A stretch of 64,000 nucleotides of DNA from Octopus sinensis (GCF_006345805.1 NC_043020.1:22506001-22570000), one strand, 5' to 3'. Shown: positions 42,863-50,537, counted from the stretch's first letter. Notes: generated by a model from the sequence alone, not told the origin. Program-made: numbers and translations.

Positions 42863-43921
42863 ATGGATTTTTCTGAAGAATTGCCAAAGAAGGAGGGAAA
42901 ATCATCATATCACTGTGATGTCTGTCAAAAGACATTCTCTCTTGAGAATAGCCTTTCCAACCATAAATGTATTCTCGGAAAAGAGAAACAATACAACTGT
43001 GATATCTGTGGTAAATCATTCTCTCGAAAGGATCACTTACGAACTCACAAACGCTTACATACAGGAGAAAGGCCATATACCTGTAATATCTGTGGTAATT
43101 CATTCTCTGCAGCAAGTCACTTAAACAGTCACAAACGTACTCACACAGGTGAAAAACCACATCACTGTGATATCTGTGGTAAATCATTCGCTCGAAGTGA
43201 CAGCCTGACTTGCCATATTCGTGTTCATACAGGAGAGAAGCCGTATCAGTGTAATACTTGTGGTGAGTCGTTCTCTGAAAGGGGCAATTTGGCTAAACAC
43301 AATTATATTCATACAGGAGAGAAATCGTATTGCTGTGATGTCTGTGGAAAATCCTTCTTTCAAAAAGTACACTTAAATTCTCACGTACGTATCCATACAG
43401 GAGAGAAACCATATCACTGTGATATCTGTGGTGCATCATTCACTGCAACTGATAAAGTAACTAAACACAAACGTACTCACACAGGAGAAAAGCCATATCC
43501 GTGTGATATCTGTGGTAAATCATTCAGTGTTGTTAGTAGATTAACTAAACACAAACGTATTCACACAGGAGAAAAGCCATACAACTGTGATATCTGTGGT
43601 GAATTATTCTCTTACACAAGTCAGCTTATAGTACACAGAAGACGCATTCATACAAGTGAGAAGCCATATCACTGTGATATCTGTGGTAAATCATTTATTG
43701 ATGGAAGTTCACTAACTGTCCACAGGCGTATACATACAGGCGAAAAACCATATCCATGTGATATCTGTGGAATATCGTTCTCTCAAAGACGTCAGTTAAT
43801 GGTGCATAAAGGACGTATTCACACAGGAGAGAAACCTTATTACTGCAATCACTGTGGTAGATCATTCACAAGTAGAAAGTCATTAGCGGCTCATAAACAG
43901 AGTCATAAGGATGAGAAATGA
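42863..43921 (+). CDS. ZF5: C2H2 protein, 11 canonical fingers plus degenerate F1, 352 aa
   Basis: ATG 42863 ([10 protein letters not shown]); F1 ends HKCIL. Confidence 0.92.
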   Translation: MDFSEELPKKEGKSSYHCDVCQKTFSLENSLSNHKCILGKEKQYNCDICGKSFSRKDHLRTHKRLHTGERPYTCNICGNSFSAASHLNSHKRTHTGEKPHHCDICGKSFARSDSLTCHIRVHTGEKPYQCNTCGESFSERGNLAKHNYIHTGEKSYCCDVCGKSFFQKVHLNSHVRIHTGEKPYHCDICGASFTATDKVTKHKRTHTGEKPYPCDICGKSFSVVSRLTKHKRIHTGEKPYNCDICGELFSYTSQLIVHRRRIHTSEKPYHCDICGKSFIDGSSLTVHRRIHTGEKPYPCDICGISFSQRRQLMVHKGRIHTGEKPYYCNHCGRSFTSRKSLAAHKQSHKDEK

Positions 43922-44190
43922 TATCACTGATATCTTTGATAAATCATTCAATGGAACAAGTCATTTATTGATACAGATGAGACATTCATACAAAAGAGAA
44001 ATCATGTGGTTACAATATCTGTGGTAATTTCTTTCATTGGTGAAAGTGCATTAACTGTTCACAGACGTATTCATACAGGCAAAAACCCATATCCATGTGA
44101 TATCTGTGGAATATCATTCTGTCGAAGAAGCCAGTTAACAATACATAAAAGACTCATTCATACAGGAGAGAAACCATTTTACTGCAATAA
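43922..44190 (+). pseudogene. Post-stop tail of ZF5 with ~1.5 nearly intact extra fingers
   Basis: [53 protein letters not shown] at ~44025-44190. Confidence 0.8.
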
Positions 44191-44478
44191 AGGCAAAGTC
44201 AACCTCAGCAGAATTTGAATGTATATATATGTTTGTGTATGCATGAGTATATACATGTTCAATCAATTTTTAAATAAATTAAATAACTTAATTTATCATT
44301 AATATTTTCATTTAGTTTTGTTTTTTTTTTCTTCATCTGTGTACGGTATCTACTTTAATTGAATATATCAATTAATTGGTACATTCAACTTGACTTGGAT
44401 GTGTTGTTTTGAACACTGTAGACTATGATAGTAGGCCTAAGAAGTCATCTCAAACTGAAGTTAGTTGTTACTTTATAT

Positions 44479-44679
44479 CAGTGCTTTTCAAACTTTTTGC
44501 TGGAGCAGAACCCCAAGGAAACATTCCACTGGCTCGAGGAACCCCTGTGCAATAATTTAATAGTCTTATACACACATATCTGCACAGGAGAATTAAAAAT
44601 TACTGGCGATTTTAGCAGTTTTGTAACTTCTTGCGGAACCCCTGGACTGTACTGGCGGAACCCTGGTTGAAAACCACTG
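44479..44679 (-). mobile_element. hAT-type MITE (same family as 16115)
   Basis: CAGTG...CACTG TIRs; 8-bp TSD CTTTATAT. Confidence 0.87.
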
Positions 44680-44692
44680 CTTTATATATATA

Positions 44693-45104
44693 CTTGCAGC
44701 TAAGCCCGGTTTCACTTGGTTTGTTTGGCTGATGTGGCTATGATCGTTCCCGGTTAGGCATAATCTATAACAGCATTTCTCAACCTTATCATTTCGGATC
44801 CCCTGTTTCGATTGGAGCCTCCAACTGTATGAAAATTTCCTAACCCCCACCCCATCAGAAAACAGCTTCTAAGCAACTGGTTTTTTTTATGGCAGAAGAA
44901 AGAGGGGAAATTCCATTAGAAAAAGTTTTAATCGATTTTCTTGGTAAGTATGGGAGCTAGGAAAAAAAATACAAACTGCATTCCAATCTATGCACCCGTC
45001 TCCACATGTGTGCCATTTTTCACGTGAATCTACCCAGCCATTGACTGTGAACCTCAAGACAAGAAAGAATACAACGCTCACCCATGTCCAATTTATATTA
45101 TAGA
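44693..45104 (-). mobile_element. Probable non-autonomous Helitron
   Basis: Minus strand A|TCTATAATATAAAT...ccaagtgaaaccggg...CAAG|T (CTAG degenerate). Confidence 0.55.
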
Positions 45105-45385
45105 TTTTATGTATCTGTGTGTGCGTTTGTATCAAAAGATGGAATAACTAATGCTTTTAAATAGTGATTATGCAACATTTGTTGGTGAACATCTATTATC
45201 GGAAAATAACACCAACCGTAGGTTTAACAATAACATTAGAAAGTAGGGCCAAGGGAAAATGGTAATTATTTCATGAAATCGAAACTAATCTTGCCCACTG
45301 GTTTATTATCTGCATTTCAGCCTCCGGATAATACGCTTTATTCATATTGTAAAGACTAAAGAGGTTTTTCATTGGAAAATGTTTA

Positions 45386-48219: not shown

Positions 48220-48225
48220 AACAAA

Positions 48226-48792
48226 TAATAATAATAATGAAATTATTGTATACAGTGCTCAGGTGCACCACAACTTGTCAGAAAATGTGTATAAAGTGTA
48301 TGCAGTAATGTACAAATGCCTGGAAAGCGAACAAGGTATGAGTCAGATACATGCTTGTGTGTGTATGGAGGGGAGAAAATCAGGTGTAGTGTTGGTGAAT
48401 CTCAGAAAGCATGGAAGTTTTGAAGGATGCAGTGCTCCGACAACTAACAACTGATGCCGGCAGTTTGTTCCATGCTTCAGCAACTCTCAGCGTGAAAAAA
48501 TGTTTCCTTAAGTCATGGGAGCTGTGCTGTTTCCTGACTTTGTAAACATGTCCACGGGTGTTAGACGGTTGGAGTTTGAAAAGGTGCTCAGGGTTATTGT
48601 TTGTAAGATGGTTAATAATTTTATGGGTGTCTGCCAAGTCAGCTGCCAGACGTCGGAGTTTCAATGTGTCCATGCTCAGGGAAGTAAAGCGTTCAGAATA
48701 TGGCAAATGCCTGATGGAGGGTATTCTTTTGGTTGCACGTCGCTGAACGACACCCAGACGATTAATATCCTGGGCAAGATAGGGGTTCCAAA
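48226..48792 (-). mobile_element. CR1-clade LINE 3' end
   Basis: WNPYLAQDINRLGVVQRRATKRIP...FFTLRVAEAWNKLP; (ATT)n tail. Confidence 0.87.
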
Positions 48793-49426
48793 GTTATCTT
48801 TTACGTACATTTTTAAAAATCTCTGGATAAACCCCAGTATTTTGCGGGACCACTGTTTGCTAGTGTTTATTTATGATGATTAATCATTAGAAAAGGCTTT
48901 TATTTTTTAGTGTGACCTTGAAACAAACGTTTTTCTGAATTTTAAATTTTTGGCAAAATATTGCCTTAATAATCATTGTCATTTATTGTCATATATGTAG
49001 TGTTACACAATCTGAAAGTGTATATGTAGTCTGTAAATGTATGAACTTTGTACCACTTTCATTGCATAATGTTATGTAAATAACAATTTATGAATATAAG
49101 TTTAGATTTTGCAGTAAAAGATTATATCTATAGTTTATCAATATAGAATTAATGTAAAATTTCACTGTTGAATCTCCATTTTTTTAAATATCTTTGTAAT
49201 CTTAAACTATTTCTCAATCATTTCAGAACATCAGATGACATTGTCATTTATTGCCACTTACAGAGAAAAGGAAGGTGATATACAGAAGAGCCACAACTCT
49301 GTGAGTGTCTCATTGAATTAATGACAGTTACTGAGAGTTGATTCTTCCAAGTGAAACGTTTCTCCTGATTGTCTGGAAGGTCTATGAGAAGATTTTGTGT
49401 TCTAATTGGATTTGGACTGATTTACT

Positions 49427-49550
49427 AAGAAGTTTGCTACCTCATTCTTATAACAATAAAGAAGCTTGCTACCTCATTCTGATAACAATAAAGAAGCTTG
49501 CTACCTCATTCTGATAACAATAAAGAAGCTTGCTACCTCATTCTGATAGT
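49427..49550 (+). repeat. 32-bp tandem repeat, 4 units, in ZF6 5' leader
   Basis: aagaagcttgctacctcattct(t/g)ataacaata starting at 49427, 49459, 49491, 49523. Confidence 0.92.
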
Positions 49551-49655
49551 CACAAAGATAACAGTTGATGCAGGTATTGCATTAGAACAGTTTTCATCAG
49601 TGCAGTAAAGGGGAAAATATATAACTGTTGTGTGACTAAAAAAAAAATAAGAAGA

Positions 49656-50537
49656 ATGGATTTTTCTGAAAAATTGCCAAAGAAGGAGGAAAAATCATCA
49701 CACTCGTGTGATATCTGTCATAAGACATTTTCTCTGAAGGGTAACCTTACTCATCATAAACTGATTCACAGAAAGAGACCACATTATTGTGATACCTGTG
49801 GTAAATTGTTTTCTCAAATGCATTTATTAACCACTCACAAACTCGTTCATTCTGGAGAAAGACCATATGAATGTGGTATCTGCACTAAATCATTCTCTGA
49901 CAGACACAGCTTAGCCAAACACATAGATATTCATACAGGTGAAAAGCCATATCGCTGTGATATCTGTGGTAAATCATTCTTGCGTAAGCATTCCTTAGTT
50001 GTTCACAAACAGGTCCATACTGGAGAAAAGCCACATGCCTGTGACATCTGTGGTAAATCTTTCTCTCGAGTACATCATTTGGTTACTCACAAAAACTTCC
50101 ATATGGGAGAAAGGCCGTATACCTGTAATATTTGTGGTCAGTCATTCACATTAAAAAGTCACTTAGAAGGTCACAAACGTACTCACACAGGTGAAAAACC
50201 ATATCGCTGTGATATCTGTGGTAAATCATTCACTCGAAGTGACAGCCTGACTTGCCACATTCGTGTTCATACAGGTGAGAAACCCTTTCAGTGTAATATT
50301 TGTGGTGAGTCATTCTCTGAAAGGGGCAATTTAGCTAAACACAAATACCTTCATACAGGTGAGAAACTGTATCACTGTGATATCTGTGGAAAATCATTCT
50401 TTCAAAAAGTACACTTAAAATCTCACTTACTTATTCACACTGGGGAGAAACCATATCCCTGTAAAATCTGTGGTAAATCATTCACAAGTGGAAGTACATT
50501 AACTGTTCACCATAAACGTGTTCATACAGGTACATAA
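49656..50537 (+). CDS. ZF6: C2H2 protein, 10 fingers, 293 aa
   Basis: ATG 49656 ([10 protein letters not shown]); intact array. Confidence 0.92.
   Translation: MDFSEKLPKKEEKSSHSCDICHKTFSLKGNLTHHKLIHRKRPHYCDTCGKLFSQMHLLTTHKLVHSGERPYECGICTKSFSDRHSLAKHIDIHTGEKPYRCDICGKSFLRKHSLVVHKQVHTGEKPHACDICGKSFSRVHHLVTHKNFHMGERPYTCNICGQSFTLKSHLEGHKRTHTGEKPYRCDICGKSFTRSDSLTCHIRVHTGEKPFQCNICGESFSERGNLAKHKYLHTGEKLYHCDICGKSFFQKVHLKSHLLIHTGEKPYPCKICGKSFTSGSTLTVHHKRVHTGT

Follow-up and report, generated by a model that had tools for sequence, protein, structure and literature searches.

A 64-kb window of the Octopus sinensis genome (chromosome CM016882.1, approximately 22,506,001-22,570,000; assembly GCA_006345805.1) contains seven tandem C2H2 poly-zinc-finger genes on the same strand, each with one exon and a single open reading frame (ORF), here called ZF1 to ZF7. 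ZF5 and ZF6, which are adjacent and 7 kb apart, encode the recognition helix RSDSLTC of finger F4 in identical DNA, and ZF7 has a different helix, QTNGLTS, at the same place. The best explanation, judged from the sequence alone, is probably a short non-allelic gene-conversion tract exchanged between ZF5 and ZF6.

The shared RSDSLTC helix

The 21-mer encoding RSDSLTC, CGAAGTGACAGCCTGACTTGC, occurs exactly twice in the window, in both cases at helix positions -1 to +6 of the homologous finger F4, just upstream of a conserved finger. An earlier account of this DNA, the sequence-only reading, had claimed that the helix DNA is identical in the two genes, and the exact match at both sites bears this out. 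The genes and fingers compared are as follows.

42863..43921, + strand: ZF5 gene, single-ORF C2H2 poly-zinc-finger gene, 352 aa
49656..50537, + strand: ZF6 gene, single-ORF C2H2 poly-zinc-finger gene, 293 aa
43166..43228, + strand: ZF5 finger F4, helix RSDSLTC at 43193-43213
50208..50270, + strand: ZF6 finger F4, helix RSDSLTC at 50235-50255
59376..59438, + strand: ZF7 finger F4, the comparator, helix QTNGLTS at 59403-59423, with 4-5 synonymous autapomorphies
26836..26898, + strand: ZF3 finger F4, helix QTNGLTS at 26863-26883, with the amino acids of ZF7 and 5 synonymous differences

Comparison was made over a 420-nt gap-free core (F2-F6) that is alignable in all seven genes and is numbered as columns 0-419; a ZF5 position is 42998 plus the column, and a ZF6 position is 50040 plus the column. 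When whole repeat units were aligned with MAFFT, finger register was lost within the arrays, and this alignment was used for the upstream region only.

The helices of ZF5 and ZF6 have 0/21 nucleotide differences, and the perfect match grows to 25 nt (columns 193-217). It is bounded at column 192 by a three-way difference (GCT in ZF5, ACT in ZF6 and TCC in ZF7) and ends on the other side at column 218 (ZF5 position 43216), where the difference is CAT versus CAC. Beginning at column 236, ZF6 matches ZF7 exactly (GGT GAG AAA CCC TTT), as the earlier account had also noted, and ZF5 reads GGA GAG AAG CCG TAT. Codon identity between ZF5 and ZF6 extends beyond the helix to His-Ile-Arg-Val, including a shared-derived GTT. 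When states are polarised with ZF1-ZF4, there are 6-7 shared-derived states in ZF5 and ZF6, and 4-5 autapomorphies in ZF7. Given identical amino acids and the codon usage of the family, the probability of seven identical codons is 9.6e-4; five of the codons (CGA, GAC, AGC, CTG and TGC) are rare in the family. With seven codons identical and five of them rare, independent convergence is unlikely (~1e-3).

A third copy of the 21-mer is absent from the 64-kb window, even with up to 3 mismatches allowed. Widespread occurrence of RSDSLTC in distant paralogues, which the sequence-only reading had named as the finding that would speak for an ancestral helix, was looked for inside the window, where the closest other match to the RSDSLTC 36-mer, in the terminal finger pair of ZF1, has 10/36 mismatches. 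In ZF7, the codons of the F4 helix region are tcc cag acg aac ggc cta acc agt. QTNGLTS of ZF7 differs from that of ZF3 by 5 nucleotides in 5/7 codons, all of them synonymous, in agreement with the earlier claim. For this pair, the proportion of synonymous differences (pS) is 0.63 in the tract, with a proportion of nonsynonymous differences (pN) of 0.03, and 0.58 in the flanks; equal values are predicted by vertical descent of QTNGLTS under purifying selection.

Three other accounts of the helices were rejected. RSDSLTC does not appear to be a recent derivative of QTNGLTS, as its second half (AGC CTG ACT xGC CAT) matches ZF1/ZF2 codons, and the helix is approximately equidistant (11-17/44) from all other F4 fingers. 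Positive selection alone does not account for the helix difference between ZF6 and ZF7, as third positions and codons for the same amino acid differ too. Nor are ZF6/ZF7 synonymous differences concentrated in helices generally (pS 0.24 in helices versus 0.25 elsewhere); F4 is the sole outlier.

Extent of the tract and tests of exchange

The tract can be described at two scales, a minimal shared tract and a longer block of low divergence.

43191..43223, + strand: minimal shared tract in ZF5 (columns 193-225), comprising the 25-mer at 43191-43215 and shared-derived column 225, with one mismatch at 43216
50233..50265, + strand: minimal shared tract in ZF6 (columns 193-225), both flanks with 0-1 mismatches per 36 nt to ZF7
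43130..43233, + strand: 104-nt low-divergence block in ZF5 (columns 132-235), from the end of F3 and the linker through the second His of F4 and Thr-Gly
50172..50275, + strand: counterpart of the 104-nt block in ZF6 (columns 132-235)

Divergence between ZF5 and ZF6 is 20% in F2, 25% in F3 to the helix end, 3% in columns 132-191, 4.5% in columns 192-235, 15% in the linker and F5, and 12% in F6. The 104-nt block, which is about one finger unit, has 4/104 mismatches versus 54/316 elsewhere (Fisher P=2.8e-4), and a window holding at most 4 ZF5/ZF6 mismatches can be extended to 106 nt (permutation P=0.005). Informative sites set an outer bound for the tract at columns 130-246, so the 104-nt block is near the largest tract permitted. 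The 5' breakpoint may lie anywhere in columns 130-195, a region without quartet-informative sites; ZF3, ZF5, ZF6 and ZF7 are only 1-4/60 nt apart in the upstream 60 nt, and because of this near-identity the 5' end is not placeable. The 3' breakpoint lies in columns 226-246, probably no further than column 235. On these sites the tract length is bounded at 30-117 nt, and the tract certainly covers the whole F4 recognition helix (-1 to +6) and the His-Ile-Arg-Val spacer. The earlier proposal that tens of bases transferred the helix only is compatible with the data but is not demonstrated by them, given this range of lengths and the low-divergence block common to both genes.

Among ZF3, ZF5, ZF6 and ZF7, 18 successive informative sites group ZF6 with ZF7 and ZF5 with ZF3. 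These are followed by 8 sites, in columns 196-225, that group ZF5 with ZF6 and ZF7 with ZF3, and then by 4 sites from column 247 that return to the first grouping. The run of 8 has P=4e-4, or 9e-4 with ZF4 replacing ZF3. As the discordant run is embedded in the opposite grouping on both sides, gene conversion over the F4 helix is the most parsimonious interpretation. When ZF6 is treated as the child in a triplet test with ZF5 and ZF7 as parents, it has an unbroken run of 12 sites that resemble ZF5 (P=0.014), and the core shows signs of recombination by the pairwise homoplasy index (PHI) test (P=0.02). Between ZF6 and ZF7, 13/44 tract positions differ, compared with 7/160 in the sequence on either side (post hoc P=1.1e-5). 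Painting of ZF6 by nearest neighbour shows it to be ZF7-like almost throughout, the order along the gene being ZF7-like, ZF5-like and ZF7-like again. The RSDSLTC patch is the sole place in ZF6 with a near-identical non-sister nearest neighbour, with 1-2 mismatches per 36 nt to ZF5 versus 7-13 to ZF7. In addition, pS between ZF5 and ZF6 is 0.18 in the tract versus 0.49-0.79 for other cross-group pairs. The whole-gene triplet test for ZF6 and ZF7 was discarded as evidence for the tract; it reflects only the homogenised upstream region of these genes and is not tract-specific.

A number of results weigh against an exchange between ZF5 and ZF6. The no-mismatch Sawyer test of this pair gives a pairwise P of 0.064 and a global P of 0.78. 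A scan that allows for site rates and pair distance gives a nominal P of 1.75e-4 for an 84-nt window (columns 132-215) and 3.6e-4 for 33 nt, which become 0.175 and 0.31, respectively, when taken family-wise. In these unbiased scans of the GENECONV type, a kind of check that the sequence-only reading had suggested, the ZF5-ZF6 tract is thus without family-wise significance, while a ZF3/ZF5 tract, described below, passes both tests. Exact matches between ZF5 and ZF6 reach 32 nt within the core (permutation P=0.36), and a match of 25 nt is not of unusual length for the pair. After Bonferroni correction over ~105 choices of quartet and topology, the quartet P is only marginal (~0.045). ZF5 is also 0-1 nt from ZF6 and ZF7 in the conserved F5 and F6 helices. 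Divergence between ZF5 and ZF6 is 2/44 in the tract versus 25/184 in the downstream flank, a difference that is not significant (P=0.12); the tract could therefore be as old as the ZF6/7-like segment of ZF5 in which it lies. Against all genes, the third-position outlier is the helix of ZF7, not that of ZF6, which fits a replacement in ZF7. Finally, an artefact of short-read polishing in a long-read assembly is possible, on sequence evidence by itself.

On the question of chance, phylogeny-blind tests indicate no excess and discordance-based tests an excess, and the exchange has moderate statistical support. The identity of ZF5 and ZF6 alone is locally unexceptional; the anomaly is that ZF7 differs.

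Mosaic genes and alternative histories

On the evidence of painting, ZF5 is a three-parent mosaic: it is ZF4-like in its upstream region, leader and F1, ZF3-like in F2-F3, ZF6/7-like from the end of F3 through F6, and ZF4-like in its C-terminal fingers. Columns ~131-390 of ZF5 are ZF6/7-like at 37/45 informative sites (triplet test, P=5e-6). Outside the tract ZF5 sides equally with ZF6 and with ZF7, at 7 sites each, most of which are autapomorphies. The assignment of ZF5 and ZF6 to different subgroups in the sequence-only reading holds at the gene ends, where ZF6 and ZF7 have 90% identity across 1.67 kb and the upstream region of ZF5 most resembles that of ZF4 (83-99%), but it is oversimplified for a gene of mosaic structure. 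Directly 5' of the focal block in ZF5 lies a second one.

43046..43129, + strand: ZF3-like conversion block in ZF5 (columns 48-131), partner ZF3 26716-26799

This block has 2/84 mismatches versus 15.9 expected (nominal P=4.8e-7, family-wise P=0.001; Sawyer global P=0.0015). It carries the F3 helix (V/A)ASHLNS and is the best-supported conversion in the window, and its family-wise significance indicates that finger-scale conversion operates in the cluster.

ZF6 and ZF7 also have an uneven history. Over 642 nt upstream (ZF6 49109-49750, ZF7 ~58215-58918) they differ by 3 substitutions and by two indels, one of 62 nt at 49433 and one of 2 nt, and in the coding region pS is 0.24 and pN is 0.066. 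A near-identical upstream region beside a diverged coding region points to recent homogenisation of the 5'/promoter region. Along the gene, pS between ZF6 and ZF7 is 0.39 in F2-F3, 0.00 in columns 126-191, 0.49 in the tract and 0.18 downstream, which suggests that they are old duplicates that have been patchily homogenised. The probable conversion between ZF5 and ZF6 is one of several such events in the cluster, together with the ZF3-derived block in ZF5 and the patchy homogenisation of ZF6 and ZF7. Elsewhere, finger F6 of ZF7 (59544-59606) has the backbone CGRAFFQ, as in ZF1 (8563-8625), and all other genes have CGKSFFQ; columns 324-356 of ZF1 and ZF7 contain 3 mismatches versus 8.3 expected (nominal P=0.003). 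This similarity may be another small exchange.

The most parsimonious version of the ZF5/ZF6 event is a transfer from ZF5 to ZF6, with ZF6 as the recipient. This direction is proposed tentatively, at slightly less than even confidence, and outgroups in the window give conflicting hints on donor versus recipient. A break in one gene would have been repaired with the neighbouring paralogue as template, the near-identical finger backbone and TGEKP linker serving as homology arms (60 nt at 97-98% upstream and ~20 nt downstream). ZF6 would previously have had one continuous ~190-nt block near-identical to ZF7, including a QTNGLTS-type helix, and this helix would have been overwritten by RSDSLTC of ZF5. 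In support of this direction, ZF6 and ZF7 differ at 6/8 third positions of helix codons versus 15% elsewhere (P=3e-4), and the third-position distance of RSDSLTC to ZF1, ZF2 and ZF3 is ordinary (3/8). Transfer from ZF5 to ZF6 is also simpler because it requires one ~190-nt ZF6/ZF7 block interrupted once, rather than two blocks that both end at the helix. In the recognition code of C2H2 fingers, Arg at -1 buttressed by Asp at 2 favours a 3' G, and Gln at -1 favours a 3' A. Under the canonical code, one DNA triplet of the recipient's target is predicted to have been altered, and the respecification in a single step that was proposed earlier can reasonably be inferred.

An exchange in the reverse direction is rather unlikely. 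Here ZF6 would have given about one finger unit (~100 nt, columns 132-235) to ZF5, RSDSLTC would be native to ZF6, and the tract would look confined to the helix through later homogenisation of ZF6 and ZF7 that skipped the strongly diverged helix. The discrete 104-nt block (4/104 versus 54/316) and the 106-nt window (P=0.005) are consistent with such a transfer, as are the pS between ZF5 and ZF6 of 0.00 in the 66-nt upstream flank versus 0.26 downstream, and the derived C at columns 134 and 146 that is common to ZF5 and ZF6/7. A multi-paralogue mosaic such as ZF5 fits a repeated recipient (the exchange directions themselves are not determined), and ZF6/ZF7 homogenisation is indeed patchy, with pS of 0.39 in F2-F3 versus 0.00 in columns 126-191 and 3 substitutions in the 642 nt upstream. 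However, two homogenised ZF6/ZF7 blocks ending exactly at the helix borders would be required, not one block interrupted once. The 6/8 differing third positions in the helix (P=3e-4) go beyond what the least homogenised block predicts, and an origin of RSDSLTC in situ from a ZF7-like helix is thereby strained. The upstream flank, moreover, is just 4/60 from ZF3 as well, and hence weakly informative. A conversion of ZF7 is improbable. RSDSLTC would have been present in the ancestor of ZF6 and ZF7 and would have reached ZF5 within the older ZF6/7-like segment (columns ~131-390), after which a paralogue beyond the window would have supplied the QTNGLTS-type helix that overwrote the one in ZF7. 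That history agrees with the 37/45 ZF6/7-like sites in this segment (P=5e-6), with the equidistance of ZF5 from ZF6 and ZF7 outside the tract (7 sites each) and with a ZF5-ZF6 tract divergence not significantly under that of the downstream flank (P=0.12). The 4-5 synonymous autapomorphies of ZF7 and its outlying third positions (6/8 versus ZF5 and ZF6, 5/8 versus ZF3; P=0.049) would also be explained. It needs an unseen donor, however, the closest relative of the ZF7 36-mer in the window being ZF3 with 8/36 mismatches, and the pS between ZF3 and ZF7 is the same in the tract (0.63) as in the flanks (0.58), as under vertical descent.

It is very improbable that there was no transfer at all, and that the identity reflects independent convergence on an RSDxLTx helix or an error of assembly or polishing, with short reads of one paralogue used to correct the other. 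RSDxLT-type helices, which are strongly G-binding, are frequent among C2H2 fingers, and this counts for convergence; the assembly is long-read based, the cluster is highly repetitive and the global recombination scans are non-significant. Nevertheless, a match of seven codons, five of them rare, has a probability of ~1e-3 on average and far less for these particular codons, and the identity runs into the His-Ile-Arg-Val codons outside the helix, including the shared-derived GTT. The two single-base differences inside the patch (columns 192 and 218) would be unexpected after polishing, and reads of 100-150 nt would reach into the 15%-diverged downstream flank.

Cluster setting and comparison with known systems

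The seven arrays, in which 78 C-x2-C-x12-H-x3-5-H units were counted, are placed as follows.

8059-9132, + strand: ZF1 array
16533-17690, + strand: ZF2 array
26668-27321, + strand: ZF3 array
35035-35943, + strand: ZF4 array
42998-44161, + strand: ZF5 array
49707-50525, + strand: ZF6 array
58875-59690, + strand: ZF7 array

Each ORF opens with a 17-residue leader that leads directly into finger F1, and TGEKP-type linkers (HTGEKPY/F) join the fingers throughout the arrays. In Pfam, zf-C2H2 matches nine stretches in ZF5 (E=6e-60) and seven in ZF6 (E=5e-49), and zf-H2C2_2 matches both (E=3e-90 and 5e-70, respectively); all Pfam matches belong to C2H2-type families. No KRAB, SCAN or BTB effector domain is found by Pfam in ZF5 or ZF6, exons upstream not having been exhaustively searched. 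The second zinc-binding His of F1 is lost in ZF3 (His to Pro, 26620-26630) and in ZF5 (His to Leu, 42970-42978) and is intact in the other five genes. An intact finger lies beyond the ZF5 stop codon (44096-44161), and a 240-nt degenerate finger array, 95.8% identical between the two genes, lies downstream of the ZF6 and ZF7 stops (50975-51213 and 60288-60527). These remnants suggest that the arrays used to contain more fingers and were cut short by stop codons. The last two fingers of ZF1 (8986-9132), with helices RSYDLTR and EACKLTK, resemble the F4-F5 pair (xxxxLTR and ERGNLAK), an indication that a unit of two fingers was duplicated within the array long ago.

The exact product of ZF6 is indexed in O. 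sinensis only (GCA_006345805.1, CM016882.1), exact-product look-ups of ZF5, ZF7 and ZF1 gave no entry, and an exact-sequence cluster look-up found none of six window ORFs in the protein collection. A search with full-length ZF6 protein was dominated by generic poly-zinc-finger (ZNF) proteins, with no match above 57% identity, and its two octopus matches (P0100 and P0118) are unrelated genes. A family-specific profile of the leader and F1 yielded one irrelevant Logan match.

Several repeats lie between the genes. Between ZF6 and ZF7 there is a tandem duplication with a 1.9-kb period and 99.2% identity (54011-56304 versus 55913-58203), which holds two identical 183-aa ORFs (55112-55663 and 57012-57563). 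An inverted repeat pair of 0.9 kb, with 96.5% identity and arms ~0.9 kb apart (30346-31263 versus 33049-32149), lies between ZF3 and ZF4 and could be a foldback or terminal inverted repeat (TIR)-type element. A 204-aa ORF at 23973-24587 has no Pfam match; its LLYGSETWTL-type motif presumably recalls the C-terminal part of retrotransposon reverse transcriptases. A dispersed family of ~400-nt repeats, with 88-93% identity and in both orientations, has at least one copy between most ZF genes and is probably a short interspersed nuclear element (SINE)-like element. Its copies are listed below, with minus orientation marked.

1-183: repeat copy
14264-14695: repeat copy
29799-30216: repeat copy
38674-39080: repeat copy, minus
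40194-40594: repeat copy
46334-46637: repeat copy
52900-53316: repeat copy
54011-54415: repeat copy, minus
55913-56315: repeat copy, minus
57813-58214: repeat copy, minus

If confirmed, gene conversion between ZF5 and ZF6 would be a clean natural case of one zinc-finger recognition helix copied between neighbouring paralogues, in which the predicted target of a transcription factor was altered at one triplet in a single event and not by many point mutations. Octopus ZNF paralogues are mosaics, and failure to mask conversion tracts will mislead phylogenies, the dating of duplications and scans of nonsynonymous to synonymous substitution rates (dN/dS) for positive selection in cephalopod ZNF expansions. 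It is conceivable, although doubtful, that the backbone and linker DNA of cephalopod C2H2 genes acts as systematic homology arms, with short tracts shuffling helices or finger units and longer ones homogenising promoters and backbones. If true, this would provide a cassette-like route to new DNA specificities that complements point mutation, and would help to explain the rapid diversification of the ~1,800-2,800 cephalopod ZNF genes. At least two helix-carrying transfers into or out of ZF5 would then have occurred in the window (F3 with ZF3, and F4 with ZF6).

In many animals, short tracts called by GENECONV have been reported between lineage-specific poly-ZF paralogues (Emerson & Thomas, 2009; PMC2604467), and a further paper remarks on the 'internal rearrangements and gene conversion' of ZNFs (bioRxiv 10.1101/2022.11.29.518450). 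Short poly-ZF conversions are already documented in vertebrates, and the octopus case would be a further example of a known process and an incremental advance. C2H2 genes have undergone massive clustered expansion in cephalopods; conversion, alongside duplication, has been invoked for cephalopod protocadherin clusters, in a paper that makes no mention of it for C2H2 genes (Albertin et al., 2022; PMC9068888). No analysis of conversion among octopus ZNFs was found in the papers examined among those matching octopus, C2H2 and gene conversion.

The closest parallel in kind is with poly-ZF clusters such as the vertebrate KRAB-ZNF genes (PMC2604467), which share with the octopus genes recent tandem C2H2 arrays, short tracts between paralogues, homology in backbone and linker, and helix positions that are otherwise the most divergent sites. 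The octopus genes differ in the lack of KRAB, SCAN and BTB, in a discordant segment that coincides with a single recognition helix, and in support that comes from discordance tests and not from a significant GENECONV global P. In PRDM9, array shuffling likewise treats helices as cassettes between near-identical backbones and alters the predicted specificity in one step. PRDM9 repeats, however, exchange sequence with other repeats of their own array or with another allele; such exchange is very common and involves backbones that are almost identical in DNA, whereas in the octopus cluster homologous fingers of separate genes would have exchanged sequence, and the remaining fingers of those genes differ by 12-25%.

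Cephalopod protocadherins belong to the same kind of animal and also form very large tandem clusters for which conversion is invoked together with duplication. Conversion there is invoked to explain homogenisation of whole genes, whereas the octopus ZF tract would import a divergent helix and diversify the recipient from its sister. In chicken immunoglobulin V genes, conversion from pseudogenes similarly swaps a hypervariable specificity segment between conserved frameworks by short templated tracts. That process is programmed, somatic and enzyme-targeted, whereas the octopus case suggests at most occasional ectopic repair in the germline.

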